Of a stretch of 64,000 nucleotides of DNA, positions 3,828 through 64,000 are shown piece by piece. Made by a program: the position numbers and the translations under genes. The stretch lies in the sequence record MH494197.1; one strand, written 5' to 3'. A model generated the notes under the pieces. The model saw only the letters and a list, made by a program, of their open reading frames with translations. It was not told the origin of the DNA and made no database searches. The first letter of the stretch is position 1, and each line of letters begins with the position of its first letter.

Positions 3828-4274
3828 TTATTTCCACCAAGTTGTATCACGACCACCAGACAAAGATTCATTGTACTGATGCCTGAAATTAGTATTTGGA
3901 TTATTTGTCATTGTACTAATAAAATCAAATTTAACATTCTCTTGAATGTAATTAATAACATTATCTTTAAATTTAATAGTACTGAAATCTAAATCCAAAT
4001 GTTCATACAATACCGGATGACAAAACTCATGTGTACGCAACGATGGCATGGTATCCTTAATGTATTGCACAGTGTTAATCATTGCATTGTATTCAGGCAT
4101 AGCACGCATCATCATTAGCTGAAAGTGTTCTTCCTCTGACATTGACTCATCCAAATCAATAACGACTTCATCATTTTTAGAGTCATATACTTTAATGGAA
4201 CTCTTGGTTGGATCAAGCATAGCCCACTCTGGATACAGGCATGTTTTCCAAAAAGGATTATTGCACTGAAACAT
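3828..4274 (-). CDS. family A hypothetical protein
   Basis: motif SEEEHFQLM. Confidence 0.6.
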   Translation of the reverse strand: MFQCNNPFWKTCLYPEWAMLDPTKSSIKVYDSKNDEVVIDLDESMSEEEHFQLMMMRAMPEYNAMINTVQYIKDTMPSLRTHEFCHPVLYEHLDLDFSTIKFKDNVINYIQENVKFDFISTMTNNPNTNFRHQYNESLSGGRDTTWWK

Positions 4275-4518
4275 ACTAATTAGATTTTGATTTTTATCAA
4301 AATAGCAAACCCAAGATCCGAACTTGGCTGTACTTCACATACACAAATATCATAAGGAGTCTTCAGTACTGAATGAACCAACTACATTTGATATATGTGA
4401 ATATGGAGTTTCTCTTGATTTTAATTCAAAGGCTCTCTCCATACGATTAACCTGTGGTTGTAATGTAATTACACCCCTCAGTACATATAAAATTCTATCT
4501 AAATCTTTAATCAAAATT

Positions 4519-4854
4519 CTATCCTCTTAGTTTAATAGTACTGGCTGGGTAATCTACCATAGTACTATCTGGTAATCCTATACAGTAATAAGGAAAATAT
4601 CCCATCATATTAATACCAATTAACATTCCTGTTTTATATGAAGTATTAATTTCATAGTGGTCGTCTATATCAACCGCCAGTCCATATAAGGATATGTTAC
4701 AATCCTTGATGTATCGTTCAAAGATTTTATACATTGATGGGTATACAGTTCCATTGGATTCTCTCACTACATCAGCCAACAACTTTATAGTACTGTTAAT
4801 CAAATCTATACTAATCATCTTTGTACTGAAAAGACCAGCAAACGCTGGCCTCAA
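4519..4854 (-). CDS. hypothetical protein
   Basis: 111-aa ORF in tight operon spacing. Confidence 0.5.
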   Translation of the reverse strand: MRPAFAGLFSTKMISIDLINSTIKLLADVVRESNGTVYPSMYKIFERYIKDCNISLYGLAVDIDDHYEINTSYKTGMLIGINMMGYFPYYCIGLPDSTMVDYPASTIKLRG

Positions 4855-5148: not shown

Positions 5149-5886
5149 TTAGAAATATACCATACCCATCAATTCTGAATCTTCAGGGCGAGTATAGCCT
5201 TGTTTCTTAACTTTAAAGTAGAAGGATTCATTGTCTTCTAAATTATAACGTTTCTTCAAGCAACGGGTATATGTCTGGCAATTAGGATGAACCCATTCAT
5301 ATATATGAACACCATCTTCATTATAACCATTTATACTACAACGGTTGCCTTCATGTTTCTTGTAGTTCTTGCTTTTCTCGGTAAATTCTTTTACAGCAGT
5401 AGTACTTGGTGATTTATATTCAAAAGGAACTTCAGTCATACGGAAATAATAATATTGATCGTCTTCATCATATCCCAAGAGCACTGTGTTAGTTTCACGT
5501 ACATTGTAATGATTCTTACTTTTCAATTCATTTTCATATATATCTTGAAGTACTTCTTCAAATACTGTAGTACTGTCAGCATTTGGGTTGGATACACCTG
5601 ATACTCTTCGTTCAATAATAAAATCAGTATATTTGCGGTCTTCTGCAATGTCTTCATTCATATAAAGACTAACGAACTTATCCTTGTACGTCTTTACACT
5701 GTATTGTTTACTTTGAACTTCGCTATATACATCTGCTAACATATTCTCCTGACCGCACTGCACACCACTTACAGAATAAGCACATGCATGTTCAGCCATT
5801 ACTGATGTTAACATTTGAAAATTTGCCATGTTTAATTCATTCGCCATCTCTGTAGCGAAACGGATACGGTCAAGCACTTTACACAC
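5149..5886 (-). CDS. hypothetical protein
   Basis: 245-aa ORF with AAGGAG RBS. Confidence 0.65.
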   Translation of the reverse strand: MCKVLDRIRFATEMANELNMANFQMLTSVMAEHACAYSVSGVQCGQENMLADVYSEVQSKQYSVKTYKDKFVSLYMNEDIAEDRKYTDFIIERRVSGVSNPNADSTTVFEEVLQDIYENELKSKNHYNVRETNTVLLGYDEDDQYYYFRMTEVPFEYKSPSTTAVKEFTEKSKNYKKHEGNRCSINGYNEDGVHIYEWVHPNCQTYTRCLKKRYNLEDNESFYFKVKKQGYTRPEDSELMGMVYF

Positions 5887-8541: not shown

Positions 8542-9401
8542 ATATGTATTATTCATCGTCATCATCGTCGTCGAGATCAGGTAAATGTCACTATCACCAT
8601 CATCGAAGTACTCAACCACTACACGGAATGTTCAGTGCTGTGAACATCGCATCATATTTTTCATCAGATGGGATAAGAACAAACTCATCAATGCTTTGAA
8701 TTTCAGGCATACGATCTTCAGGAATACCCATTTGCAACAAGGATTGGATGATTTTTCTTTGTATTCTTGGAACTTCTCTTCTGATTCAAAATCCATAATA
8801 AGTTGTGCTACATAACCATCTTCGTTACCAAATGCGATTGACATTTGTGCATCAGTACCGACATATGACCATGTACGCTTGCCAGTATTTTTCTCAATGA
8901 AGTTCTGAATTTCAAGAACGATTTCATGACGAGAACTATTGGCAATGTTGTTAAGGTTAGCAACACCAGCAATAATTTCTGAACTGTCATTGATTCTTCG
9001 AATGTGCCATAGTCACCTAATACATATTGAACACCATCACAATGTAATGCATATGCATAATCCAAATCAGCAAGTGAATCACACTTACCACGGATTGGGC
9101 GTAGGGAAAGCCCTAGGCGAAGATAACGAAAGTATGTATTAGTATTTGTATTTGTCAACGTAATGCTCCTTAACAATATAAAAGTAGTTGCTGTTGTTGT
9201 CAAAAAGATGACTAATCCTTTGTAGACATTTACACCAATCTTGATTTGGCATATTTTATTCGATTTACAAGCCTCAGTCAATAACATTTTGTGCTCTTTA
9301 CTGAAAGTGTGGAAGAGTGGTTTTACATGCCACATCTCCACACCATCTAGTACTGGAAATGTTCACTGAATTTGATCATTGATTCTTGCAAAAATAACCT
9401 G

Positions 9402-10238: not shown

Positions 10239-10760
10239 ATGTTCTTCATCACCTGACCAATAGATTTAAGATGGTTGATTTTAGCTGGAGTCAAATACTT
10301 ATCCAGTACTATTAAACAACTAGGGAATGGAGCACTGTCAGTCTTTTATCTGGTTCTTCAGGGATACCGAACTTTAAGCGACCTTTTATAAAACAAATAC
10401 AATCACAAACTTTCGCAGCATAATCCTGAAAGGCTATAGTATCAGTTCTTGATGGTACGAGAATCAGTACTGTAGCACCTTTGTTATATGCATCAACTGC
10501 CTTAGATAACCACGTTTTCAAATCACTGTACGGTGGGTTGAGCCACACGATATTGTTTCCCAGTCCTGTTCAAGTGAATTGTCTTCTGGTGTAAAGAACT
10601 TATCACACAATGCAGTTTCTTTGACACACGCTGCATCTAGTGTAAATTCCCAGAGTTCATCCAAATCTTCAAAGAAATCCTTTGGAGTAGTCCAGTTATC
10701 TTTTCCAGTACTGAAATGTACTGATTGTTTTTCTTCGAAGCATCCTTCTTCGACATACAT
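10235..10760 (-). CDS. dam: phage DNA N6-adenine methyltransferase (PF05869 Dam-type), frameshifted in the assembly
   Basis: W.TPKDFF, FTLDAAC, WLNPPYS (motif IV), LVPSRTDT, FIKGRLKF across track ORFs 10518..10760 and 10312..10548; TGA stop overlaps the next ATG (ATGA). Confidence 0.88.
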
Positions 10761-47811: not shown

Positions 47812-49963
47812 TTACTTTGGATCTCCTTGACTAATGCATCAACCCACATGTCTATATACATTTGTTGATAGTTTGTCCCTATGAGTGCCCTGCATAGAGT
47901 TCAGCTATCATTGCATGTTTTAGGTTGGCAGGATGCTCTTATCAGATTGAATCTTTACTCTTCTGTTGGCACATGTTTTCAGGAGTCTGATGTATTCAAA
48001 GCCTTGTAATTTTCTCATTCTTTAGATATCACCTTGTTACGTAAGGCACTTAACAATACGTCAGTGTAGATGTTTTGATAGTTTGTTCCTACGAAAGCAC
48101 CCAACTTCATTTCAGCTATTATAACACATTTGTCCTCTTGTGCAATAGACTTGTCTAAAGAAATACTAACAACTTTCCTTCTTATAGCTTGTAATCTCCA
48201 ATGATACTGATACTCATTTAGGGTTATCATTCTCTCGCCTCCATATCTCGGTTCTAATGTGTTGACATTGTGCTTCGATGAACATATCTATTGATTTGGC
48301 AATTGCGTTTTTATCTGTGCCAGTCATCAGTACAAGCATCTCGGCCTCACAGTGAAGTAAACGCATGATATCATAGGGTAATATTCCAGATACCGTGTCA
48401 TAGTGTTTCTGTGCCAGTGTCTGTAATAGTTTACAATACATTTTGTGATTTAGTCTGTGTCGCATTGTTTATTCCATTCTTTTTGGCCCTCTGGGTTTTA
48501 TATTGGATTTGGTTTCTTAATGCTGATAAGTATCGTTGAATGAACAGATCTTGATAGTTTGTTCCAATGAATTTCATAAGATAAAGTTCACCGTTGATAA
48601 CATCCACTTCAGGTGCACCATATAAGGCATTGTTTTTCTAAGGGCATGGATTAAAGAGAATAGGGCAGTTTGATACTCAACTCCTGATAAAGTCTTCATG
48701 TTTTGTGAGCCAATAATCATCTAGTTTATCCTGTATAACATTCATTAATTGTTCGACATATTCTGTGCAAAACTTATCTTGATATTGAGTCCCATAAAGT
48801 ACAGCAACCATAGCTCATTAACTTTAGCTCGCATTTGGTTCCATGTAAGGCTGGGGTCATCGTAGACTATCCTTGCTATAGGGTTAGTTTACGGACTATA
48901 GTTTCATATTCATCTAGTGTTAAGTGTTTCATTTACATTTGTCCCTTATTAGATCAGTGAGGGCAACTATGTGTGCAACAACATACTCTTCCTGAAAGTT
49001 CGTCCCAGTACAGCCATCATGCGTATATCGGTGGTGTTTATCCTGTGTTCCCTTACACATAAACCTTCTGTGTGAGGAAGTGTAAAATATTTGTTTATTG
49101 CAGCAATGATAATTTTATTCTTCTCGGAATTACTTAAATGTTTCATAGTTTGCTCTTAATGTATTTCTGGAGTGCAATTATATACTCATTCAAGAAGTGC
49201 TCTGATAATCTGTGCCGAGGAATGCACCCAATAGTATATCATTTTCCAATACTAATGCTAAGTTCAAATCATCAGTCTCTTCATATACTATGAGAATTTC
49301 AAGTTGTCTGGCAGCGACGCGTTCGGTATATTGATTTGAGTTTGCAATGATATTCATAGTTTACTCTTTATGTAATTCTTGAGTGCAATTAAGTATTCCC
49401 CTACATAATACTCCTGAAAGTCTGTATCCAAAAATGCACCCATAAGTAAATCTTTTTCTAATACCCTTGATAAGTTAAGGTCTGCATTTGAAAGGTATAT
49501 AAGTAAGATTTCACCCTGTGCGGAATTGAAACGTTTCTTATATTCTTCTGGTGTTAAAAAATCATAGTTTACTCTTAATATCTTCTATTAAAAATGAATC
49601 CAATCGTCAACATACTCTTCCTGATGGTTTGTGTTCAGTACAGCCAACATGCGGATCTCTGCTCTTGCAACTTGGATTTCAGTTTTAGAAAGGTCTTTGC
49701 TGATATCAAACATTAAGTCCATGTATTTCAAGATAAGACCGAATGATTGGGTTCGTGTTATAGTTTTCATTGTTTCCTCGTGGACAATATTTCATTTTTC
49801 AATGCATCCATATATTGAATCACCCATCTTCCCTGATAGCTTGTTCCCAATGTAATCAAAAGGTATAACTCAATTCGTTCTAAGTTTGTGTCTGTGTTAT
49901 AAATCTTTACCATGTTTTTACGTAACAGTTCTTGATAATCTTCTTTATTTAAAATACGCATTT

Positions 49964-50161
49964 TCATAGTCTACCTTTTATGTCCCTTCGTAATTCTTGT
50001 AAGTATAGTTCGATATACTTTTCTTGATAGTTAGTTCCTATGAAAAGTTTCATAACCAATTCACGCTTATATGCAATACCACGGATATGTGACATATGTA
50101 GGATATATGCCATGTTGGATATGAGTGTGTGGTTGTGCTCTTCTTCAGTTAAAATACGCAT
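49964..50161 (-). CDS. family B small protein (first gene of the array)
   Basis: MRILTEEEH start; LFIGTNYQEKYIELYL. Confidence 0.75.
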   Translation of the reverse strand: MRILTEEEHNHTLISNMAYILHMSHIRGIAYKRELVMKLFIGTNYQEKYIELYLQELRRDIKGRL

Positions 50162-50309
50162 AGGGACTCCATTAAAAATAATATCAATCCCATAATATAC
50201 GATTCATATAAAAGTCAATAACATTTTATTCGTAATACCCTTTATCGAAGTCGCTAAGGTTACCCGCCCTTTAGCCCCTACGCATTTTGCCATAGTCCAA
50301 TCCTTTTAT

Positions 50310-50379
50310 TCATAAAAGTCAAGGGATTACCTATGCATTTTTTAACGCTGAAGTTTAAAAATGCCTTGACTTTTTATGA
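50310..50379. repeat. nested inverted repeat at the array/early-region junction
   Basis: TCATAAAAGTCAAGG ... CCTTGACTTTTTATGA arms enclosing a GCATTTTTTAAC/GTTTAAAAATGC inner stem; third ATAAAAGTCAA copy at 50208. Confidence 0.7.
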
Positions 50380-50637
50380 TTCAGTACTAAATCCTTTTAC
50401 GCATTAATCCTTCGTTACGCTTACGATTATCTGTGTATCCCCATAGTCCTGCCATACTTCCACGCCAGCCGTCGCCCGGTTAGTCGTGCTGTCATCTGCT
50501 TAATGGTCTTAGGCTTTAGTGGAACCTGTTGCAGTACTGTACGCATAGTATCATCGACGTTATCGTGTACGCCTGCAATAGTGCCTAGGACGCTGTATAC
50601 GTGTATAGAACATATGTATGCCCTCCTGATATAGTTA

Positions 50638-50657
50638 AGGCCGCTACAAGGCGGCCT
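50638..50657 (-). terminator. GC-rich hairpin, probable terminator
   Basis: AGGCCGC-CTTGTA-GCGGCCT followed by TAACT. Confidence 0.5.
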
Positions 50658-51646
50658 ATGATGTTTGGTGATGTGTAACGCTTACAGTCCTAAGATAGTG
50701 CGTGCTTCGTTACGTTCCGTGCACAGCTGCATGATGTGAGCAAGTAAGTCCTTGCTAATGTATCCGGTGTTCATAGCTTCACGAATAGATACATCATAAG
50801 CACCGAACCCGTGCGAACGATACGCACATCATTCAGGTTAGTATTATAGATACCGCCGAGATCAACGGCTTCGAATACTACATCAACAGAATATTCATTG
50901 TTGCCATCGTGGAAGTTTTCCAGTGCAATAGTATTGGATACCGCCCAACGTTTGCAGTTTCAATGATGCGGCACTGTTCCGGTTGGATAGTGCCATTACT
51001 TACAGCGTACTCCAGTGCATCTTTACCAAAAGTCCGAGCCAGTACTAAAACGTCAGCGAAGGAAGTGATTGAGAAGGTCATGATAAAACTCCTTAATTTA
51101 GGAGGGAGAACCATTTCCTCTCTATGTAAAACATTATACATGAATCTAAGTACTATGCAAGTACTTTTACATTTTAATACCGGATTCAGGTAGCGGTGAG
51201 ATCCATATTCTGGATCGGTTTCGGTCCAGTACTGTAAATCGATAGTACCTTTCGCGTTAATCTTGTCTACCAGCTTATTCATCTTAGCGTATACTACGTC
51301 AGCATCGATGCGTTTAAAGCCAGTAGCTTTAGTGAAGTAGTAGTGATTTGCTTCACTATCATTAAGGATATACCGAGCACCGTTTGCCGTTTGTGCGATA
51401 ATGATTGAGTATTCTACGTTACGGTCGAGGCCGTCGATGAATACAGAGGAAACATTAGTACGGATGAAAGCTTTAACGATAGCGATTGAAGTAGTCATTT
51501 TGAATCTCCTAACTTTGTGGGCCGTCGCACCATTGCCGCCCTACGAGATACATTATTGCAGTACTGATATACTTTGTCAATACTTTTTATTAATAGTTTT
51601 AGTTCCACCAGCAGATAGTTACTCACCGTTATTAACTATATATTTT

Positions 51647-51724
51647 GGATACACCTATGCACCCTGTGGGCTAGTTTTTGTCTATGCGTATATATAGCAG
51701 GACTGACCGAGTCAATCCCTTTTT
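51647..51724 (-). repeat. CCCAYAGGGTGC element, copy 1
   Basis: GGGATTGACTCGGTCAGTCC..GCTATATATA..TAGCCCACAGGGTGCATAGGTGTATCC. Confidence 0.85.
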
Positions 51725-52022
51725 ATTCTTTTTGTTAGATGATTCTCCAATCATCAACGATCATGGTAAGATACCGAACCAGTGATTCGAGTGATTCGTG
51801 TTCTCGATAGTCTGCCGCTCCACCAGCGGTACAAGTACAGCCGATTAAGCCGTTTTGTAGTTCCGGATCTTTACGTCGATCTGGTTGGCTTTAGCTTCTT
51901 TCAGTACTTCAACCGGGCGAGAGCGATAGACATAATGTTTTACTCCAAACTATTGGCGGGAGAACTATTCCCCGCTCTATGTAAAACATTATACATTACT
52001 GGTTAGTACTGTCAAATAGTTT

Positions 52023-52280
52023 TTATGAAATATCTTCGATGTAGTCGGCCCATTTCATTTTTTCAGTACTGTCAATGGCTACCGGATTATTTGGATCAAA
52101 CCATTCACCATTACCGCAGTACATACCCACGGCTACGGTTTTATAGCCATCCCGGGCCGCACACCACGACATTGCACGATAGATATGGCCTTTAACTGGT
52201 TGCAGTACTGGTAACGTTTTATGGTCTTCTACGTAGGCCATAGCTTGTGGATTTACCCGATATTGTGTGAACTGTTCCAT
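52023..52280 (-). CDS. hypothetical early protein
   Basis: 85-aa ORF with its own promoter (52309) and RBS. Confidence 0.65.
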   Translation of the reverse strand: MEQFTQYRVNPQAMAYVEDHKTLPVLQPVKGHIYRAMSWCAARDGYKTVAVGMYCGNGEWFDPNNPVAIDSTEKMKWADYIEDIS

Positions 52281-52716
52281 TATGTTTCCCCTTGTAGTTA
52301 GTAAAGTTATTACATCAGTACTATCAAGCTATGTCAATAGTACTGAAATAAAACTTTTAGATTAGATTATTGAGGCCGTCAATGGTAGACTCACTTTCTT
52401 CTTTCTCCCATTGTCGGTAGTACTTCCATGCTTCATGATAGGTGGCGATCAGTTCATCTTTTGATCCGGTTACATGCCAGTACTGAATCACGGTGAGCGG
52501 TGTTATAGATAGAATCGAATGATTTCTTCTCTTCTGCCGTTAGCTACTTCCCGCATCAGTTCATCAAAGTTAGCCATTTTATTACTCCTTTTAGTGGGGA
52601 GGATATCTCCCTATGCAAAACATTATACTTTGTTTTAGTTATTATGCAAGTACTTTTTCATATAAACATTAAATTCTACACCGCCGTAACCTTCCACGAT
52701 GATATGTTTTGCGTTA

Positions 52717-52902
52717 TCACGTTTGCACATAGTGAAACCATCGTTTACGTGTTTTGCATTTTCGGGCGACATCACCGATAGCGGCACATACGGCACTAAT
52801 AACAGTATTCCGCAAAGTACTGGTATCATTGGCGGTCATAGTAGTTTGCAGTACTACGTTGTCGTATACGTGTGCATTGATAGTGATTTCGATAGTGTTC
52901 AT
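52717..52902 (-). CDS. hypothetical early protein (frameshifted)
   Basis: own cassette promoter at 52950. Confidence 0.55.
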   Translation of the reverse strand: MNTIEITINAHVYDNVVLQTTMTANDTSTLRNTVISAVCAAIGDVARKCKTRKRWFHYVQT

Positions 52903-53233
52903 GGTGTATCTCGACTGGCGGGAGAACTATTCCCCGCTCTATGTAAAACATTATACGTTAATCTAACTACAATGCAAGTACTTTTAAATTTTATTTCCGA
53001 TATAGTCCGGTCTATTCTTTTCGGTCATACGCTTTGCTAATGTTTGCATATGGCTTATTGCTTGTAGTGTATCCTCTTCCGGGATGAATCGAGATAATCA
53101 GGATCATTCTTCACCTTGCAATGATTATGATAGCGTAGTACTGCCAGTACTTTTTAACTTCTTCTACTGTCATAATAAGTACCCACTTCGTTAGCTTTCA
53201 GGTTAGTATCAATCATCAGTGGATTTTTGTAGT

Positions 53234-53440
53234 TCACAAAACGAGTAGTTTTCTCGATAGCGAATCCCATATAATCCAGCTTACTAACAGTACATTCATT
53301 CTTAAAACTTCTTTCGCTGCATCGATGGCTGATTGCATGGATAACCGACCATCTAAATTAATGTTTCCAAATGATCCACCAGCAGAAGTAGGATTACCGT
53401 TCATATCTTTAATGATCATAGTAGCGGAGTAGCTGGACAT
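53234..53440 (-). CDS. hypothetical early protein
   Basis: own cassette promoter at 53494. Confidence 0.6.
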   Translation of the reverse strand: MSSYSATMIIKDMNGNPTSAGGSFGNINLDGRLSMQSAIDAAKEVLRMNVLLVSWIIWDSLSRKLLVL

Positions 53441-53527
53441 AATTTTGTTTCCTTTTATTGGTGTGGGAGAACTATTCTCCCTTGATGTAAACTATTATAC
53501 AGTACTGATATACTTTGTCAAATACTT

Positions 53528-53931
53528 TTATTCGCCCATATAGATTAGATTATCATCGCCTACATAGGATCGCAAACGTTGATTTCTTCGCAGTACTTCG
53601 TGAATACATCGCCATAGTGACCTAAACCACGATCCCAAAACCAGTTCCGTGACCTTCGCGGGTAAGGAACAGATCATGACCAGCTTGCTCATAACCGTAA
53701 TCAATAAACATACCGCGAACTACTTCCAGATCATTACCGTGTTTCTCAATGAAGCGAGAACATGCAATCACTGCCGCTTGATGGGCTTGCTCTGATAATT
53801 CATAATCTTCCGTAATCGCCGTTCTCATTGTGTACAGTACTGAATTGCATAGCTTCAATGTAAGCTACAACCATTGCAGCATGATTTTTATCGTTAGTGA
53901 TGTTCCGAGCGAGATTAGTAGTAGTAGACAT
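53528..53931 (-). CDS. conserved phage protein with GHD(L/F)(F/W)LTRxGHGxGFWD motif
   Basis: GHDLFLTREGHGTGF; one extra T restores WDRGLG; own cassette promoter at 53983. Confidence 0.7.
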
Positions 53932-54347
53932 GATTTTATTCCTTTTAGTATCGGGGAGAACTATTCTCCCTTGATGTAAACTATTATACAGTACTAATAT
54001 ACTTTGTCAATACTTAATTACGTTTAAAATGATATGTGCCTTTATCATCCTGTACGCCCCATACTGATTTACCATCAACACCAGTGAAGCCGGATTGTAA
54101 TTCAATATGGAAACCATTATTATCAACTACAAAAACTTTTTATTTTCATCCCGATAACATTGATATTCTGAATCAACATTAAAGGCCGCATCATTCAGAA
54201 GATTAGAAGCGTAAATGCAAGTCATTGTAGTCATGATTTTATTCCTTATTGCCGTGGAACCGTTCCTCTCGATATAAAACATTATACTTGATTCTAAGTA
54301 TAATGCAAGTACTTTTTAAAATAGTTTTCAGTACTGAATACTTATAT

Positions 54348-54435
54348 AATAGATACACTTCCGCACCCTATGGGTCAGTGAGTTATCTCTCAATGGATAT
54401 ATATAGCAAAGGACTGACCGAGTCAATCCCTTTTT
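54348..54435 (-). repeat. CCCAYAGGGTGC element, copy 2
   Basis: GGGATTGACTCGGTCAGTCC..CTGACCCATAGGGTGCGGAAGTGTATCTATT. Confidence 0.85.
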
Positions 54436-54507
54436 AATCTTTTTATCGTGTTACCTTACTTGCTGCCACATCACGCTTTTTATAGTACTGATTCCAGATA
54501 TTGCTGG

Positions 54508-54825
54508 TTAAACCGTAATCAAGTACTTTAATAAGTCCATTACGATCCCGCCGATATTCTGTTTTCTGATATCTCTTATCGTTAGTGTTGATAATGTATC
54601 ATCGACGTGTTGTAGTGCATCAGCAAAGCGGTGCTGGCGTTCAATGGCATTACGTTTAATATTGTACTTTAATTCATTGCACGCGTTTACGTGCTTTACA
54701 CTGCCTTTACTTGCAGTACTCAACCGATCCATAACGATAAACATATTATCAGGATCGCATAAATGCATATGCACCTTTGCAAAGTACTGTTTCAACTGAG
54801 GGCGGTCATAGTCTAAAAATTCCAT
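54508..54825 (-). CDS. hypothetical early protein
   Basis: 105-aa ORF with AAGG RBS. Confidence 0.55.
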   Translation of the reverse strand: MEFLDYDRPQLKQYFAKVHMHLCDPDNMFIVMDRLSTASKGSVKHVNACNELKYNIKRNAIERQHRFADALQHVDDTLSTLTIRDIRKQNIGGIVMDLLKYLITV

Positions 54826-55892
54826 ACCTTACATTCAGTTTCATTTTGTTCGACACCCGCATCACAATTCGCGACCTTAATCACTAACCGATCATTTAAA
54901 GCGAAAACTATACGGGAAGATCCGCCCGATGATCTCCAGTCCAGCTAACCGACAAGCTGAAAGGATCTCTTTGTTGGTTTCCATTTCTGACAGTGTACGG
55001 ATGAATTTAGTATAATTACGCATTGCATGTTCTCCTTGAGTTAATGAAACTATATTACAGTACTTTACTATCAATGGCAACTACTTTTTAACATTAACGG
55101 CGTGAATCACTTCCTTAGTGTTTTTAGTACTGAATACTTTCGCCGCTCCTTGTTCGACCGTGATACGATAGCGACCATTAACATCAACCATATTAATAAA
55201 GTCCGGCGTGCTGAATGGTGTTGTTTTGCATTTGAGTACTGTTAACAGTTCCACCAGCGATGTAGTTTCTTTGATACGTTTTTCTAAAGTAATCATTTTG
55301 TTTCTCCCCGTGTTGGTATGTACATATAGTACTAAAACATTTGAGTACTGTCAATTAGATAATATTATATTTCTTAAAATAAAATGCGTCTTGTGTTGGT
55401 TGATACTCGATACCGTTACCGTTATTGACTTCAACTAATAAACCTTTGTCAATAAGTTTTTAATAGTACGATACCCTTGTTGAAAATTGGTAAAATGTGA
55501 ATCATTACGAAAGGTATAACCGTGCTTAACTGCTTCATCAATAGTTTTCTTTTCGATTTTAGATAATTTCATTTTGTTTCTCCCGTGTTGGTATATGTAC
55601 ATAGTACTAAAACATTTGAGTACTGTCAACGTGATATTAGTTTTATTTTCTTATTGTATTGTTGATGCTCATAAAGGTTTATCTTTCCTGTGTTCTCGAT
55701 TACTATCCTGTTGTTAGTGTCCACATCGATTACACGCAGTTTCCGTTGCTTAACTTCCGGGTAATAGGTTACCATTAATAAACTCATTAGCAAGCTGTAC
55801 GGCCTTTGTGATGATTCTCTTCGGTGCTTTATAGTGTACCCGTAAGATGTTATCTTTATATAGTTGAACCTTAATCATTTTGTTTGTCCTAT

Positions 55893-55916
55893 AAAAAGGC
55901 GGGAACTGATCCCGCC
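55893..55916 (-). terminator. Rho-independent terminator
   Basis: GGCGGGA-TCAGT-TCCCGCC followed by TTTTT. Confidence 0.8.
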
Positions 55917-57581
55917 GTGTTGTTAGTACTGCAAGTTATTAGATAACCGGCGGCGTTTACTGTATACTGTTACACGATTACCCTTACGGTCGTGTCGGAT
56001 CTCTTTCTGGTTGCGAATCAGTTCACTTGGACGCTTAAGGTTTGCCGTGATCCGCGTGAGTCCATGCATTGGCATTTACCTGTACTTTGATATCAGAACC
56101 AGCGATAAACTCATCTTGTGCGTCAGTATTGCCGCCAGCATATCCGCTCGTTTTAGTTCTGCTGCTGTTAGTACTGGCTCAGGTGAATTCACAATATCAG
56201 AGATCTTTGAACTGTACGGCCCAGCGTTGGCCTTTCGGTGCATCTTTGCCCATGTCTTTAAATGCTGCTCCTTCCTCGCGTGCAACAATACGGGCAGCTT
56301 CACGGGTAGCGTAGAATTTAGTAATCATGGTATACATCCTATTAGTTAAGTTAGTACTACAAGTTAGAGTCTATTATAAAGTACTATCTGGGCAATGTCA
56401 AATAGTACTTTAAATGGATTCTATTACATGTCTTTCTTACGTTTTACATCGTGGTAGCGAACTGTTATTTCTTTGTTGATCTCTTCCTCGATGCGGTGAA
56501 TAACTTTTTCTTTCGGGTTGAAACCTATAACGGTTTCTTTAATGATCTCAAGCCCGTGTATTCGCCTTGTGTACCGTAACCGTATGTAAAGGTTTCGTGT
56601 CCCGTGTCTTCCAGCGGTCGCCAATTAACGCAGACACGTAGCAAGAGTGGTAAGTATTGCCGTGTGAATCAGTCCACCGATTAACGTTAATGTCAAAGGA
56701 GGTTACAATTTTCAATTCTACTTTCTGGGCAAGGATCATAGCCATTTTATTTCTCTCTTTTAGTTAGGAGGAACCATTCCCTCACTTGATGTAAACTATT
56801 ATACAGTACTAAGATACTTTGTCAATACTTATTTTTGGAAAGTTTACGCATTAATTCTACGCTTTCTTGTGAACGTTTTGCTACCGGCAAGCTGCATGGG
56901 TAGTAAACATTTTGTATAGTCTGACGCTTTGCCACCGAACCGAGCGGCACGTTCACGGGCACTTGGAACTAATACTATTTCTTTCTTGCAGATAGTGCAC
57001 TTAGCCATTTTATTTCTCTCTCTTTGTTAGAGGGGAACCGTTTCCTCACTCGATGTAAACTATTATACAGTACTAAGATACTTTGTCAATACTTAATTAT
57101 TGTAAATGTCGTGAATAGTGATAAAGTTTTTACGACCGTAAACCTGCAAATCAATATCAATGTAGTGCTTATCTAGTACATCCTCGACGCTTAACGCGGT
57201 GTCGTGGATATCTTCGTAGAATTGAGTATCTACAATCTTGCTTAAGTCATCCGGCGTTAACTCATCGTTAAGCAGTTGAACCGCCGGATATCTGCTTCAC
57301 GTTTCCAGTCTTCCAGTTAGTAGTCAGTACTTGTTCGATTTCGTTAGCTGTCAGTAGAATCCGCATTTTTATGTTTCCTTATCAGTGGTTGATGTAAGTA
57401 TTATACTCGTTTACTTTCTATTGTCAAACTATTTTATCAGGGAGTTTTTCGTATGTCTTACTCGACTACTTAACGGGGTTACTTGTTTCGTTCCCCGTCC
57501 TGATGTAAAACATTATACTTGATTCTAAGTACAATGCAAGTACTTTTTAAAAATAGTTTTCAGTACTAGCCACCAGCAAAC

Positions 57582-57653
57582 AATAGATACATTTATGCAC
57601 CCTGTGGGCTGATTTGTTTCTATGCGTATATAATAGCAAAGGACTGAATCCCT
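57582..57653 (-). repeat. CCCAYAGGGTGC element, copy 3
   Basis: GGGATTCAGTCCTTTGCTATTATATA..CAGCCCACAGGGTGCATAAATGTATCTATT. Confidence 0.8.
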
Positions 57654-58959
57654 TATTCAATTATTTTTAAACTTCTTTCGGGTTGCGATAGGTGATAGCG
57701 TTCGGGTACATTTGTTTAATGTTATTCCATGCCCGGTTGACATTGTAACCACTTGATCGAATCAGTTGGTTACTACCGACACCTTGAAACACTACTTCGA
57801 ATAAGAATTCTTTCATGCTTTCACCTCGCGATCTGCTTTACCTTTACGCCGACATTACTAATTGTTCGCGTTGCCATAAGTCGAGTGATACAAAAGTTTT
57901 GCGGTATCACTTTTAGGATACTCGCCATTAGTACCTAACCGATAAAACAGATCTTTCAGTACTGATAATTCTACTTGGATCATTATACTTTCTCTTTGTT
58001 GGGAGGGAACTATTCTTCCGATATAAAACATTATACACTTTATTCAGTACAAGTACTTTTAATCTTTCAGCCAATGATCCTGAATGAATTTTTCACCGGA
58101 ACCTTGCTGCATTGATTGTAACAGACGTTCACGATGAGCGGCGGCGAATTGCTCAGTACTATGCGTTACACCGGTTGATATCTGGATTCACCATTGGGGC
58201 TGATGTATTGTACATCCCACGGTTTTTCGTTAGTATCAGACCATTTACGAACGATTAGTTGACCTTGCATTTTTCTTTCTCTTAGTGGGGAGAATCATTT
58301 CTCCCCTTCATGTAACTTATTATACAGTACTAGATTATCTTGTCAATAGTTTTATTCACCTTGTTTGAATTTAGTTTTCTCCATTGATTCCATGATTGCA
58401 ACCAATACGCCGTGGATCTCGCTTAACGCGGAATCACTAAAAGCATTAATGAATAGTCGATCATTCTCGCGAATATTTTTAATGTACTTTTCAGCAGTAG
58501 TTGCGAATTCATTCAACGGTAGATCAAATGCTTTATCCCATGATGGATGGCGTAATTGTAACAGTACTGGATTATCACGATCACGGGAAAACGTACCAGT
58601 GATGAAACATACGCCCGAATACTTTCGAACTGGCAACGGACTTCCTTTGTGATAGTAGTATGAATGTACATTTATTGTTATCCTCTATTAAATTAATATT
58701 ACAGTTTATGAATCAATTCTTTATCTAAGCGATAGCGTACATTATTAATAGTAACGGCATTGTTTTAATGCTACGCTGTACAGGTCCACCAGCAATAACA
58801 AATGTTGCTTTATTACCCCGAACAATGATAGCACTTCCGTGATTACCGAAATCATCTTGTACTAAAATACTTGATAAGTTTTCCATTTTATTTCTCTTAG
58901 TAGGGAAGATGTTTCCTTGATGTAAGTACTATAACAGTACTGAAAACTAATTGCAAGTA

Positions 58960-59313
58960 CTATGATAAAATCATGATAGGATATTCACTATCGATCAGTA
59001 CCTCGAATCCGAACCCTTCGTACCATTCTTTAAGATTAAAGGCGTTATCTTCTCCGTATCGCATTCTAAGATGATACAATCTGAATCATCAGCGGCATCG
59101 ATAAAGGCATTCATTAATTCGTTACCTTCACCATTGCCCCGACTATCAGGATCAACATAAAGAGAATCAATGAAAGCAACACGGTCATAATCAAGATCCG
59201 GTGCAATGATTCCACGTTTAACAAACCAGTACTGCAATTGTGCTACTTTGCTGTACCTGATAACCAGTGATCTCGCCATTGTCAGTAGTACGCGTGATAT
59301 GTTGTATTCCCAT
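58960..59313 (-). CDS. GNAT-family acetyltransferase (frameshifted in the assembly)
   Basis: FIDSLYVDPDSRGNGEGNELM (acetyl-CoA-binding motif A) and, in the next frame, LKEWYEGFGF (motif B); own promoter at 59343. Confidence 0.8.
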
Positions 59314-59877
59314 GATTTCTATCCTCAGTTAAGATATAAAACATTATACACTATCTTTCAGTACTGTCAATTACTTTTATCTCATAGATCTATGCCAACA
59401 ATTACGCGGATCTCTTTAAAAGTACTATCATGATCCTCCGGCAAGTAATACAATACATGCACCTATAACGGCCCGGCGTCGATTCTCAGGGATTTTACCG
59501 CCGCAGTCGAGGCAATGTACAGTGATTCTCTTTGTGCGTTAATTTGCTTTCTAGCGTGGTTAACGGCGGCCTGAATCACTGCGTTAATCTCGTCTTGTTC
59601 GGCCCCGTCTTTCGCGAATCCTACAGCCATTATTTTAACCTCATTATAAAAATACTATAGTACTGTAATGCTACAATAATACTACTAGTGCTAATCTTAT
59701 TCAAACCACATGATACTACATATCCACCAGCATTACCACGGATAGTAACGCCTTTGTACTGTCTATATAAATTCAACTGCGTATATTGCCTTTGATCAAG
59801 AATTGATCAGAATTATACGCCTTATGCTAAATTGATCCAGTACTTTTGATCATTTATTGATCGATGTTATATAGTTA

Positions 59878-59912
59878 CATTTGTGCACCCTATGGGTTAG
59901 TGACGTTCTCGT
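59878..59912 (-). repeat. CCCAYAGGGTGC element, partial copy 4
   Basis: CACTAACCCATAGGGTGCACAAATGTA downstream of the cassette promoter at 59925. Confidence 0.7.
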
Positions 59913-60224
59913 CTTGATGTAAGTATTATGCCAGTACTGGAGGATATTGTCAATAGATTATTTTAATTTTTTCTATCATTAATTAATGCTTTCAGTACTA
60001 TACTAATAACTTGCAATGATTCATCAATGACAATGAAATTATTCTCTTTCATTAGATGATAGTTACCATTGATTGTATATTCTAACGAGTACTGTTTACG
60101 TTTAATTTTTGATAATGTTTCTATTTGTTTTTGTACTGATTTCATGCTAATCATTGTCAAACGTCCTGTAACGCATTCTAACGAGATAAACGGTTGAGTA
60201 CTGGCATTGTATAGGGTAATGATT

Positions 60225-60252
60225 AAAGCCCACCAGCGTTAACCAGTGGGCT
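60225..60252 (-). terminator. probable terminator
   Basis: AGCCCACTGG-TTAACG-CTGGTGGGCT followed by TTAAT. Confidence 0.55.
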
Positions 60253-62066
60253 ATAATCTTACATCTTGCGGATAATCTTAACAGTATCTTTCACCGATTT
60301 ACCGTTTTGCTGACATTGCTCGATCATCGCGTATTGTTCTGCGGTCAGATCCTCGCCAGTTTTTGCCAGTACTGCGTCGATGAATGAATCCAGTGCGATC
60401 ATTTTGTTTCTCTCTTAGGTTAAGTTAACTACTGTTTATAAAACTTATTATACAGTACTATCAAACTATGTCAATAGTACTGGTAATATATTTTAGCGGT
60501 AGTCGTCGTATGCTTTATTCACGGCGAATATAACTTTCAAAGGCTTCGTCTACCGTTTCATACTCCCGAACATAATCACCATATGAAACTACATACATAC
60601 CTTTTGATCTTCAAACGTCATGATGATAGAATCCAGACCAACGATTTCAGTTTTTGCGATGATAGCCATTTTTAATTCCTTAGTAGTGTAGTTGATAAAA
60701 GTTATTATGTCAGTACTATCAAACTATGTCAATAGTACTGTGATAATATTTTAGTTAATGATAGTCAGTGTAAAATTGTAATCCCCTGCCCGTATAGTAC
60801 TTTATCGCCGAACGTTCCAACACGTTTCATATTGCAATAGATACCCATAACACTTTTACATCTTTGATATTCCGAACGCCAGTAATATCCTTGTTTAAAT
60901 GATCGTGATCAGAAAATAAAACTTGTTTTGCATTTTTCAGTACAGTGCAGATATTAGCCATTTTGTTTTCTCTTCTGTTAGTGGGGAGAAGTTTTTCTCC
61001 CTTGATGTAAACTATTATACAGTACTATAATCTATTGTCAAACTATTTTTTATATTATTCGAAATCTTCTGGACCGGACTGATAATCATCTTCACCGTAT
61101 GCACTTTCTAACCGCTCGCCAGTGCAATCATCAGTTAGTGAGTCATCCTCATAGTTCACGTCTACGCCAGTGATGTAAAACTGGCTATCGTCTGGATCAT
61201 TGAAATTAATTTTCTGGATGTTTACAATAACTGTATTGATGCCGTGACACCGCCATCAGCCGTTACAAAGTACTGATATTTTTCACAACCGCCTGAATTG
61301 AAACCGTAATTAATTTCGGCCCGACCATCACTTAAACGCAGTGTCTGAGCGATGATTTCATTTTCAAAGTTAGATTGAGCAATTGCAATAGTCATGATTT
61401 GTTTCTTATTATCAGGGAAACCGTTTCCCTTTCGATGTAAAACATTATACGCTTATCAGGAAGTAATGCAAGTACTATTTCACGTTAATTTCAAAGTACT
61501 GCTCTTTGATGTTTTCCTGTTGGTAAATCTCGTTTAATGCTTTAAGATCTAAAACCTGTTTACCTGCTGCCTGAATATACTTTTAAGAGTCGCTAACAGC
61601 TTCTCAGGCGTGTTTGTAGTCTTACGTGTTGGGATCTTATCGTGCCCCATAGCGTAGTACTGCTTACGTGCTATAGTACTGATAACACTGCGGTACGGTT
61701 CCATGATCAGCTTGTCTGTATTCGTCGCTATCCCCAAACTTCATACCGTGGATCGCAAAGGTCATCATCATGCGGTCGTTATCGCGGATATTGTGGGGCA
61801 GTCGGCAAGCTCGCGAGTCAGTGACATAGTGATCCCCACGTCGCCACCCAGCGGTAAAGGTCGGGCGATAAAGAAACCGTTAGGGAATACTTTCAGGAAG
61901 TTTTCTTGAACTGCTGCGACGAATTCGATGCTATTCATAATTCATTTCCTTAATTAGTGGGGAAGTTGTTTCCTCTTGATGTAAAACATTATACGCCTAT
62001 TGAGATAGTTTGCAAGTACTTTCTACAAATACTTTTAAAATAGTTTTCAGTACTCAATACTCATAT

Positions 62067-62156
62067 AATAGATACACTTATGCACCCTGTGGGCTAGTGA
62101 GCTATCTCTCAATGAATATATAATAGCAAAATGGCTGACCGAGTCAACCACTTTTT
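62067..62156 (-). repeat. CCCAYAGGGTGC element, copy 5
   Basis: GGTTGACTCGGTCAGCC..TGCTATTATATA..CTAGCCCACAGGGTGCATAAGTGTATCTATT. Confidence 0.85.
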
Positions 62157-63652
62157 CATTTATTTTAGCTTTTAGAATCGCCGCCTTTCGCGTCATGCCT
62201 TGCTTGATGTATTCTGTACTTTCGCTTTACGTGCATTCGCTTTATTTGCTTTCGTAAACGCCGAACAACTTTTATAGTTTAAACCTGTTGGATTCATTTA
62301 AATCACCATAAAGAATAGATAGGTTACTAACAACGCCGCGATCAATGCACCGACCGAACTGTAATAAGCTAATGATCTCATTTTTAGCCTGAAAATAATG
62401 TTTAATTTGAGCGGCGGTCAGTGCACAATTACGCAGGAAGTTTTCTGTATAACTTTTGCGAGTACTGAAAGAGAATTGACCTTTGCTGCTGCCGATAGTA
62501 ACATCAAACCGAGCGTTGTATTGTTTCATTTTGTTTCTCCTGTTATTGGGGAGAATCATTTCTCCCTTCATGTAAAACATTATACAGTACTAAAACTAAT
62601 TGCAAGTACTATTTTTAGATTTACGCAAACTTTCTACCATCTCAGGAGTAAGGTCTGCGGGTAGGAAACTACTTCATCAACGAAACGTAAAGGAATACCC
62701 CAGCGAAAGGTGAACGTGCTTTCTTAGTATTACTCTTTTTGATGCTTTCATTTCATATTCTTAATTAGTGGGGAGAATCATTTCTCCCTTCATGTAAAAC
62801 ATTATACGCGTTTAAAACTAATTGCAAGTACTATTTGAAAGTAAATGCTCATACGCTACATTAACTACGTTTTCAATAACCGACTGTACAGAAAGATCCC
62901 CACTTCCGGCTATAGTAGAAATCGCTTACAGTAGTGTCATCGTATGCAAATACTTTACCGTGACTGCATCAATCACATACATATTAACCTTTAAGATGTC
63001 GATCTTATCCTGTACAGTAAGCATATTAATTAACCTTTTAAGTACTGACTTAAGTAATCTTGTTGATCTTCGGTGATTGCAGCCATCTTCCCTAGTACTG
63101 GATTAATGATATAATCCCTGTAACGTCCTGTAACGCATTCTCAGGCGGTTTAACGGCTGGGGTAGCCATAGCCATTGCCGACTTGTTCGACGCTGTAACG
63201 CTCATAAAGGCGGCATTCTTCCGGTGTTAACATAGCATCAATGCGTTTCATTGGTTTAATGATGCTTTCGATCTCATTCAGTACTTGATTAACGTTCATG
63301 GTATAATCCCAATATAAGCGGCCTAAATCGACCGCTAACGATGTTTTGATTAATAGGTGTATGGTTGACGTTCAAACAATGATTGCACGTTGTACGCCCC
63401 GCTTATGGGCTTTGCTGGTAAATCAATTTTATATTGTTCACGCTTAAAGATAATAAAACGGCAATTGTTTTAACATCAAAATTGATTGAACGTTCCGAGT
63501 TTACCATCGTGCACAAATACAAGATAACCGCTCGCTACTTGTTTTGTAGTACTGGTTGCAACCATAGACCGCCGAACATGTGTACCTGCGTCGATTAAAG
63601 TACTGATATTTTTCATTTTACTATCCTCTTAAGTTGATTTAATTTCTTTCCC

Positions 63653-63690
63653 TATGCAGACACTGTACCAAAGTATCTGCATAAAGTAAA
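63653..63690 (-). promoter_or_regulatory. promoter TTTACT-N17-TACAGT overlapped by an operator-like inverted repeat
   Basis: TATGCAGA(C)ACT-GTACCAA-AGT(A)TCTGCATA spans the spacer, -10 and +1. Confidence 0.5.
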
Positions 63691-64000
63691 GCTAATTAAA
63701 GATCTTTTTACGTTTTACATCCTGTACAGTACAATGCAACGGGATAGACAAATCATTGCACAAACGATAGAGGGAGGTTTCATCAGTATTAAGCCCGTCT
63801 ACTGATTCCTTTAAGAGAGATAACGCCGTTTGTTGGTATGCATCTTCATAGCCATAAGTAAATGATTCAACCGCCAGATCATTCAAGCCGTTATCCAGTT
63901 CGACGCTTACATGACAAGAATGATGTATTGCCATATGAATCAGACCAACGTTTACCGTCAACATTGATTGCACGGATTGCAGCCGAAACGGTGTTAATGA

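Follow-up and report, generated by a model that had tools for sequence, protein, structure and literature searches.

A promoter-coupled, structured leader repeated in the terminal repeat of RaK2-like jumbo phages as a candidate early non-coding RNA

T4-like phages carry PeSL elements, in which a strong σ70 early promoter and a terminator stem-loop form a composite that is repeated between small ORFan genes of a plastic early region and offers homology for the gain and loss of cassettes (PMC2839356, PMC4122927; accessible parts of these papers). Highly expressed non-coding RNAs (ncRNAs) have been described in the terminal repeat of PA5oct, a Pseudomonas relative of the phages considered here (PMC7318152). 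In the present work, we analyzed a stretch of 64,000 nucleotides (nt), called the window, that is 100% identical to positions 62001-126000 of record MH494197.1 from Escherichia phage CMSTMSU, an Asteriusvirus jumbo phage of the RaK2-like group. The window holds five copies of a short element whose terminator-promoter composite is, by analogy with what the accessible PeSL descriptions say, a close counterpart of the T4-like cassettes. Based on the anatomy of the copies, their coupling to promoters, their conservation, their covariation, and their stand-alone contexts, all of which we observed directly, we propose that the repeats represent a structured non-coding RNA unit, coupled to a promoter, that had not been described before. 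The reading that we favor, a short early ncRNA that would dock a conserved protein and would be carried on a PeSL-like cassette, has in our judgment a probability of about 0.55 when the RNA unit is taken as a whole.

Anatomy and distribution of the element

The core CCCAYAGGGTGC occurs five times in the window as an exact match, compared to 0.03 matches expected by chance, and no extra match appears in the window when up to 1 mismatch is allowed. All five lie on the minus (coding) strand (Table 1), and a covariance model (R1) matches each of them as well as at least two further copies just outside the window (locus L008, 4318-4370 on the minus strand and 2712-2764 on the plus strand). A first-pass annotation of this DNA had reported a five-copy element, and this count holds; it had missed, however, that the element is on the minus strand, and its coordinates give each copy's low-coordinate end on the plus strand. 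It had also called copy 4 partial, which is incorrect, since this copy has the 5′ hairpin, the core, and the 3′ box, while its remark that copy 4 stands behind an ordinary promoter is right. Upstream of copies 1 and 2 we find the hairpin GGATTGACTCGGTCAGTCC followed by a T-tract, and copy 5 has GGTTGACTCGGTCAGCC. The TTGACT-carrying hairpin that had been assigned to the element's own promoter does exist, but together with the TTTGC behind it, it reads as the intrinsic terminator of the upstream operon, a role that had been overlooked and that agrees with the ARNOLD terminators annotated in phages G17 and GAP32. The reported lack of TTGACT in copy 3 is true of this record, as is a short T-tract in copy 1, but both are intact in G17. 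Likewise, a further tract said to be common to copies 2, 3, and 5 is present, as AGTACTGAAAACTATTTT, but we read it as an A/T-rich UP-like tract plus the AGTACT box of the next promoter, to which the AAAATAGTTTTCAGTACT tract belongs in this reading; this connection was missed. All five window copies are of the tandem-promoter type, and copies 1 and 3 are among a minority of short variants in which the stem is absent and an A-rich segment is kept.

The location of these copies can be derived from a related genome. In phage vB_Ec-M-J, the direct terminal repeat spans 1-21525 (∼21.5 kb) and contains the orthologue of copy 5 at 10357-10468; mapped from there, the terminal repeat of CMSTMSU extends over ∼51.0-72.5 kb in window coordinates, in agreement with a climb in G+C content from ∼32% to ∼39% near 50 kb of the window. 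The mapping and the rise in G+C together place all five copies inside the terminal repeat, where their neighbors are small genes on the minus strand. For comparison, the terminal repeat of CBB measures 22,456 bp (PMC5259590). The array of consensus host promoters in the terminal repeat is unusually dense, with 11 perfect TTGACA-16/17-TATAAT promoters in 14 kb (window 50000-64000, minus strand) and several more with 10 to 11 of 12 matches. Record MH494197.1 is labeled UNVERIFIED_ORG, its open reading frames (ORFs) are broken up compared with those of G17, and homopolymer tracts are shorter, as in the T-tract after the copy 1 terminator, while the GACTCCGGT of copy 3 is lost; given the fragmentation relative to G17, these are probably sequencing errors and not biology.

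Across the phage loci that we fetched, the parts of the element follow a fixed order: a σ70-type promoter, ∼7 nt, CAT, a hairpin (HP1) starting between +2 and +5, a linker of 4 to 5 nt (YUAR), CCC-N3/4-GGGUGC, 8 nt, a YRYCYAU box, and A/T-rich sequence, with the A of CAT as the predicted transcription start. The counts of promoters, contexts, terminator embedding, and ORFs that follow refer to 120 distinct copies. By a strict test, a σ70-like promoter is present at 107 of them, its −10 ending 26 to 35 nt before GGGTGC (one outlier at 46), compared to 15% of random positions with such a promoter at any distance; of the remaining 13 copies, those inspected have −35 boxes of the TTGCAT type. This supports the first-pass claim that the core travels with transcription rather than with one promoter. 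A G+C-rich hairpin with A- and T-tracts on its flanks carries the −35 in its 5′ arm in 42 copies, and in this stem TTGAC is kept while the rest varies; A-tracts are found upstream of the −35. No conserved ORF spanning the element was found among the 120 copies, as expected for the untranslated element that had been proposed.

The element is widespread in these phages. With a 111-nt query, matches of 73 to 100% identity are obtained in 63 phage records, which represent 8 host genera, the most distant matches (73 to 80%) being in K64-1, RaK2, Munch, CBB, GAP32, Serratia BF, Yersinia fHe-Yen9-03, and Erwinia phages. A covariance model search of related genomes, the check suggested in the first-pass annotation, showed conservation across several genera: R1 has 126 matches (115 distinct sequences) at an E value of ≤0.001, in jumbo phages of Escherichia coli, Klebsiella, Salmonella, Pectobacterium, Cronobacter, Serratia, and Yersinia; nine loci account for 76 of the matches (E <1e-3) and IMG/VR loci for the other 50. 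RaK2-like jumbo phages have about 7 to 17 copies per terminal repeat. A stricter sequence pattern found in IMG/VR only contigs of 345 to 378 kb, and a 353-kb "Synergistales" contig was dismissed as a carrier because R1 has no match in it. In 596 Gb of bacterial genomes, the stricter pattern gave 39 scattered matches in unrelated taxa, none of them in Enterobacterales, compared to ∼140 expected by our own uniform-composition estimate of chance, so that we also rejected a counterpart in the bacterial host. R1 had 0 matches in the searched 17 kb of the PA5oct terminal repeat, the stretch that holds both ncRNAs, and these RNAs, unrelated in sequence, were discarded as homologues. A cmscan of 49000-64000 against Rfam 15 (E ≤1) returned only a chance small nucleolar RNA match (E 0.43) elsewhere in the stretch, and our literature search found the motif nowhere described; the CBB paper lists RpoD-like promoters, this core not being among them.

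Pairing and covariation of the leader

HP1 consists of 3 to 5 variable bp and a purine-rich loop ending in AA (GCGAAA, GAGAAA, AGAACAA, or AGAUAA). An unsupervised hairpin scan places a stem of 4 bp or more at the same position in 47 of 60 copies (shuffles: mean, 24.5; maximum, 32), and these stems comprise 28 different sequences. On the R1 alignment, 94.8% of the cells pair, all 4 pairs have changed on both sides, with 3 to 5 pair types, and the covariation score is 0.475, compared to 0.153 for shuffled alignments (0 of 500) and at most 0.064 when the alignment is slid. RNAalifold returns the same HP1 together with an RCCC-loop-GGGU mini-hairpin.

Downstream of HP1, CCC and GGGUGC are almost invariant, with intervening letters that vary in sequence and length (ACA, AUA, AUU, ACC, UAUA, and UAGA) and a compensatory CCU...AGG core in two copies. 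The downstream box is 94 to 100% paired to GGGUG, compared to 30 to 52% when slid; its five columns show transitions only, all of which keep this pairing (G-U to G-C and U-A to U-G), and 6 of the 8 rare changes within GGGUG keep it as well. The GGG can thus pair either with the CCC just upstream, forming the mini-hairpin, or with the downstream box, and the two helices are mutually exclusive. Their energies are nearly equal (mean, −4.7 versus −3.6 kcal/mol, with 48 and 52 copies favoring each), so that folding alone leaves the choice between them undecided and a two-state element is possible according to these models. Because both helices use G-U pairs, the signal is specific to the transcribed sense strand; together with the compensatory changes in HP1, this G-U-tolerant pairing indicates that the functional strand is RNA, in line with the first-pass suggestion that the element acts as RNA. 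Two additional structures were considered and dropped. A pseudoknot between the HP1 loop and the 3′ box (AGAUA/UAUCU, by eye) suits only the subclass with AGAUAA loops and not the GCGAAA loops, and an intrinsic terminator formed by GGGUG/YRYYY has a tail of mixed A and U with no U-run.

Genomic contexts, proposed role, and alternatives

The contexts of the copies bear on what the unit makes. Forty-one of them form tail-to-tail convergent pairs, with 45 to 56 nt between the cores and no coding room in between, and 10 reach an intrinsic terminator first, so that 51 copies (42%) have no gene behind them; for 39 copies the next feature is a second σ70-like promoter serving the following gene, and for 30 it is something else. 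As ∼42% of the copies stand alone, the RNA itself looks like the product, and since the genes have strong promoters of their own, the unit seems to serve for making RNA or for acting on its polymerase rather than for expressing a gene. The convergent pairs form long imperfect palindromes with facing promoters ∼120 bp apart. In Mimasvirus and Eneladusvirus phages, their positions are syntenic and close to the two borders of the terminal repeat (locus L003, 1008/1076, 3818/3886, and 20840/20908; L004, 3789/3857, 6618/6686, and 22899/22967), with similar pairs in loci L005, L006, and L009 and in IMG/VR loci; none occur among the copies found in the Asteriusvirus sequence examined.

Relatives differ by cassette-sized insertions and deletions, and in a metatranscriptome contig of a related phage, a deletion joins exactly equivalent points of copies 3 and 4 (57624 to 59921), which is what recombination of the PeSL type would produce. 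Contigs from metagenome and metatranscriptome runs skip stretches between element copies, 2.3 kb at this place and 5.2 kb from 56834 to 62071, the latter joint being weak, with only 25 letters on its shorter side. Such joints indicate, as far as assembled contigs go, that there are relatives without whole cassettes. Among 30 neighboring early proteins scanned with Pfam, 26 have no family and none has an RNA-binding or antitermination domain; the early cassette genes include a DksA/TraR-type zinc finger (E 1e-11), a ParE-like toxin domain (E 5e-11), and a weak protein kinase match.

We propose that each copy would be a small, self-contained early transcription unit used by the host σ70 RNA polymerase. 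Its dedicated promoter, whose −35 TTGAC lies within the terminator hairpin of the preceding operon in about a third of the copies or more, would start an RNA with the conserved element as its first ∼55 to 60 nt. The working entity would be this RNA and not the DNA, supplied by many strong promoters in the terminal repeat, a region of small early-type genes, and it would exist either as a free short RNA (at convergent pairs or terminators) or as the leading part of a longer transcript extending into the next promoter. In the likeliest mechanism, the HP1 loop and the invariant core would be presented to a conserved host or phage protein, which would be titrated or redirected. Transcription, the 3′ end of the RNA, and the identity of the partner are predictions within this scheme, and the decoy mechanism as such is more tentative than the RNA unit; we would bet against it, if not heavily. 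In a second role, the repeat would mark cassette borders and offer homology for cassette gain and loss, as PeSL does in T4-like phages. A bolder version, possible though in our view doubtful, would make the element a new class of early RNA: ∼60 nt long, capped by a 5′ hairpin, bistable (CCC:GGG versus GGGUG:YRYYY), and expressed from up to ∼17 promoters per repeat, with a role in target capture or in cis. Its target would be a conserved enterobacterial factor, such as a component of transcription or RNA decay or an RNA-sensing defense protein, or else the host RNA polymerase would be reprogrammed in cis without a lambda-type boxA; if true, either variant would amount to RNA-based host takeover in jumbo phages.

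Several points weigh against the RNA unit. Most copies lack a terminator of their own, so that many of the RNAs would be mere 5′ leaders, and the start sites and 3′ ends are predicted from promoter geometry alone. Of four runs examined for 56500-62400, the only one with raw RNA reads yielded 0, and those consisting of contigs may be DNA and do not show transcription. The nearby early genes are mostly ORFans, and no partner protein was found among them. The model alignment was fitted to the structure, which inflates the pair counts, an objection that the hairpin scan, made without the model, partly answers as an independent check. The competing helices are backed by few informative changes because CCC and GGGUGC are nearly invariant, and the similarity of copies within a genome could stem in part from gene conversion.

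The main rival, which we consider unlikely, is that the element is a cis-acting leader for elongation control, akin to nut, put, or ops, in which HP1 (boxB-like) and the core would load a host or phage factor onto the polymerase that transcribes them, perhaps through a hairpin-stabilized pause ∼10 nt after CCC/GGG, followed by read-through of cassette terminators. The strict coupling to the start site suits this idea, as does a purine-loop hairpin set beside a conserved linear box at the start of operons that all close with an intrinsic terminator, a layout loosely reminiscent of lambda nutR (boxB, then CACC-TAT-GGTG-TATGC). The consensus pause motif has G at −10 and U-G-Y followed by R, and in our column counts G35, U42, Y44, and R45 fit part of it; moreover, the DksA/TraR-type protein of the cassettes belongs to a family known to bind RNA polymerase. 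Yet boxA-like sites (YGCTCTTWA, ≤1 mismatch) are no more frequent than chance (51 matches versus 52.8 expected), with none on the minus strand beside a copy, and the ops-like GGCGGTAGnnTG (≤2 mismatches) has 8 matches versus 12.4 expected, with none at a copy. At the 51 copies that face a partner or a terminator instead of a gene, antitermination would yield antisense RNA only, and with 11 perfect promoters in 14 kb, many genes have consensus or near-consensus promoters of their own, which makes read-through unneeded for their expression. Nor does Pfam detect an N-, Q-, or NusG-like protein among the 30 early proteins, an N-like one being short and easily missed. An improbable alternative is that the repeats are only a recombination scaffold, PeSL-type cassettes kept alike by gene conversion and by selection for shuffling, whose leader would do nothing more than aid promoter clearance or, by way of the 5′ hairpin, stabilize the transcript. 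The composite of terminator and promoter among ORFans matches the PeSL description in the accessible parts of its papers (PMC2839356, PMC4122927), and the joint between copies 3 and 4 and the cassette-sized differences between relatives fit as well. But the core is invariant across genera despite diverged flanks, promoter spacers, and hairpin stems, which gene conversion within a genome does not explain; the hairpin keeps its pairing through different sequences, and the stand-alone convergent pairs flank no cassette.

The other readings have less in their favor. Primer RNAs of R-loop origins, as at T4 oriF and oriG, would leave a G-cluster RNA, made from a strong promoter, hybridized in the A/T-rich stretch downstream to prime the leading strand, with convergent pairs as bidirectional origins in the terminal repeat. 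The succession of a promoter, a G-cluster (GGGUGCGGAG), and a markedly A/T-rich tract, the many copies in either orientation, the tail-to-tail pairs near both repeat borders in CBB and GAP32, and the kinship of these phages to T4 (PMC5259590) could all be accommodated. We hold this to be very unlikely, since a primer needs neither an invariant 12-mer nor a covarying 5′ hairpin, and the cumulative GC skew shows no switch in the window. Ranking just behind it is a site acting as DNA, either an operator (a class of site among the first-pass proposals) or roadblock for a repressor at +21 to +33, or the activator box of a MotA-like middle promoter, consisting of GGGTGC, 11 bp, and a TAnnnT-like hexamer. 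CCC-N3-GGG is indeed a short inverted repeat, and a −10-like hexamer often follows GGGTGC by 11 nt (TATTAT, TATAGT, TAAAAT, or TATAAT). The N3 spacer can nevertheless be N4, neither the orientation nor the distance to the upstream start site varies, and a covarying hairpin with transitions that keep G-U pairs makes sense for one RNA strand only, all of which disfavors the operator; the middle-promoter variant was set aside because the hexamer is weakly conserved, its position 6 being T in only 33 of 60 copies. Finally, GGGUG might be the Shine-Dalgarno sequence of a leader peptide or mini-ORF starting at an NUG 5 nt downstream (Met-Tyr-Leu...). ATG, GTG, or TTG is found there in 56 of the 120 copies, with MYL as the commonest beginning, but 64 have no start codon, the ORFs range from 1 to more than 39 codons, and the second codon changes radically (Tyr to Arg, Cys, His, or stop), which leaves this reading practically no credence.

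Phage therapy and biocontrol work makes use of RaK2-like jumbo phages (about 350 kb), yet their early programme, with its hundreds of ORFans, is opaque. The element offers a non-coding signal, strongly conserved and simple to search for, that occurs in phages of at least 7 enterobacterial host genera. As a decoy or a leader that modifies the polymerase, it would add a new RNA-based device for takeover and help to find its protein partner; as mainly a cassette border, it would explain the shuffling of early genes. Either way, it provides an annotation model for the borders of transcription units and an ncRNA family missing from Rfam.

Table 1. Features of the five copies and selected neighboring genes (window coordinates unless stated; parts are listed 5′ to 3′)
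Feature	Position	Strand	Composition and basis
Copy 5, terminator hairpin of upstream operon	62128..62154	-	−35 TTGACT in 5′ arm; terminator-like match, G17 orthologue is an annotated terminator
Copy 5, promoter P1	62120-62147	-	TTGACT-16-TATTAT; promoter-like match
Copy 5, leader element	62064..62117	-	R1 match, 62.7 bits, E 1.4e-14
Copy 5, core	62082-62093	-	CCCACAGGGUGC; preceded by hairpin UGAG-AGAUAG-CUCA and linker CUAG, followed by 3′ box GUGUAUCUAU
Copy 5, AGTACTGAAAACTATTTT tract	62037-62054 (within 61988..62054)	-	UP-like A/T tract with AGTACT boxes; sequence
Copy 5, second promoter P2	61988-62015	-	TTGCAA-16-TATAAT, serves next gene; promoter scan
Copy 4, promoter	59925..59953	-	Plain TTGACA-17-CATAAT, extended TG, outside any terminator; promoter scan and sequence
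Copy 4, leader element	59867..59919	-	R1 match, 38.9 bits
Copy 4, core	59885-59896	-	CCCAUAGGGUGC; preceded by hairpin GACG-AGAA-CGUC, followed by 3′ box AUGUAACUAU
Copy 3, damaged terminator hairpin	57630..57653	-	GGGATTCAGTCC, TTGACT lost in this record; sequence, G17 orthologue intact (L001, 7449)
Copy 3, −10	57630-57635	-	TATTAT; sequence
Copy 3, leader element (short variant)	57579..57627	-	R1 match, 38.0 bits
Copy 3, core	57597-57608	-	Preceded by A-rich 5′ segment AGAAACAAA without clear stem, followed by 3′ box AUGUAUCUAU
Chi site 3′ of copy 3	57570-57577	-	Sequence
Copy 3, AGTACTGAAAACTATTTT tract and second promoter P2	57512..57567	-	P2 TTGCAT-16-TATAAT (57512-57539); sequence
Copy 2, terminator hairpin	54411..54430	-	GGGATTGACTCGGTCAGTCC, then TTTGC and TATATAT-type −10; orthologous terminator annotated in G17
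Copy 2, leader element	54345..54398	-	R1 match, 67.8 bits
Copy 2, core	54363-54374	-	Preceded by hairpin UGAG-AGAUAA-CUCA, followed by 3′ box GUGUAUCUAU
Copy 2, AGTACTGAAAACTATTTT tract and second promoter P2	54281..54335	-	P2 TTGCAT-16-TATAAT (54281-54308); sequence
Copy 1, terminator hairpin	51700..51719	-	GGGATTGACTCGGTCAGTCC, T-tract shortened in this record; sequence, G17 orthologue (L001, 1428)
Copy 1, leader element (short variant)	51641..51689	-	R1 match, 40.7 bits
Copy 1, core	51659-51670	-	Preceded by A-rich AGACAAAAA, followed by 3′ box GUGUAUCC
Chi site 3′ of copy 1	51605-51612	-	Sequence
Next promoter after copy 1	51552-51580	-	TTGACA-17-AATAAT; promoter scan
DksA/TraR-type gene	8864-9118 in G17 (L001)		Pfam; orthologues of this and the next two genes at about window 58995-59279 and nearby
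ParE-like gene	5441-5692 in G17 (L001)		Pfam
Gene with protein kinase match	4252-4833 in G17 (L001)		Pfam

Two short sequences are enriched in the same region. Chi (GCTGGTGG) occurs 10 times in the window, compared to 0.30 expected, and 8 of these sites fall within 8.6 kb of the terminal repeat (51605-60237), all on the coding (minus) strand, with two directly 3′ of element copies 1 and 3. A co-oriented excess is also seen in G17 (8/0), K64-1 (9/1), Yen9-03 (6/0), BF (6/1), Munch (11/2), CBB, and GAP32 (loci L001 to L006 and L009), with no Chi site in the PA5oct stretch searched. In this orientation the sites would act on RecBCD that comes in at the right-hand end of the repeat, an arrangement suggestive of genome-end protection. 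There are 236 occurrences of the palindrome AGTACT in the window, compared to 18 expected, and it is absent from ∼34.1 to 42.8 kb and from 44.9 to 50.4 kb. In early promoters it flanks the −35 on both sides and adjoins the −10, with a spacing of 22 bp (AGTACT-A-TTGACA-N9-AGTACT-G-TATAAT), and it is frequent within coding sequence too; it may serve a phage protein as a binding or modification site.

Comparison with known systems

Like the CsrB/RsmZ sponges, the element would be an ncRNA abundantly made from strong promoters, but its core has GGGU instead of GGA; by our own count, GGA is found at columns 37-39 in ∼40 to 55% of the copies, and it lies in a hairpin loop in only about half, so that the CsrA-type sponge put forward in the first-pass annotation does not fit. 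Hfq-type trans-acting small RNAs end in a Rho-independent terminator of their own with a U tail, which is reached first in only 10 of the 120 copies, and the PA5oct ncRNAs differ in that the stretch holding both gives no sequence or model match. The T4 MotA middle promoters have a similar spacing between activator box and hexamer (about 12 bp), yet the box of the element is unrelated to TGCTT, and its hexamer ends in T in only 33 of 60 copies. RfaH ops/JUMPStart elements differ as well, GGCGGTAGnnTG not being in the leader.

The element also resembles lambda-type nut sites (boxA-boxB, N antitermination) and the boxB-boxA-boxC of rrn leaders in having a promoter-proximal small hairpin with a purine-rich loop and a conserved linear box, upstream of terminators, and lambda nutR has a small CACC-UAU-GGUG hairpin after boxB. 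In the lambda sequence itself (L072, 38229-38379), this CACC-TAT-GGTG-TATGC triloop hairpin is followed by GUAUG and is loosely like CCC-AYA-GGG-UGC...GUGUAUC, which we regard as a lead only. The hairpin of the element covaries and has a purine-rich loop, which is of 6 to 8 nt (GCGAAA, AGAACAA, and others) where boxB has a GNRA-like pentaloop. Further differences are that no boxA (CGCTCTTTA-like) stands beside this hairpin and that each genome has 7 to 17 copies of the element, a third of these being in facing pairs.

In its composite of terminator and promoter, the element is a close counterpart of PeSL, as far as the accessible parts of the PeSL descriptions allow the comparison. The two diverge at the 3′ end, where PeSL finishes in the start codon of the following gene and its Shine-Dalgarno sequence, whereas the promoter of the element leads into a conserved, structured, non-coding stretch of ∼55 nt, beyond which a second promoter, a partner copy, or a terminator usually comes next. 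The invariant core and the structured leader have no counterpart in those parts of the PeSL papers. On the other hand, the element shares with PeSL a consensus σ70 promoter with an A/T-rich upstream region and a predicted terminator stem-loop that overlaps the promoter, the −35 of the element being inside a terminator stem in 42 of the 120 copies. It also lies, like PeSL, among ORFans (26 of 30 proteins without a Pfam family), with one cassette-deletion joint and with insertions and deletions between relatives.

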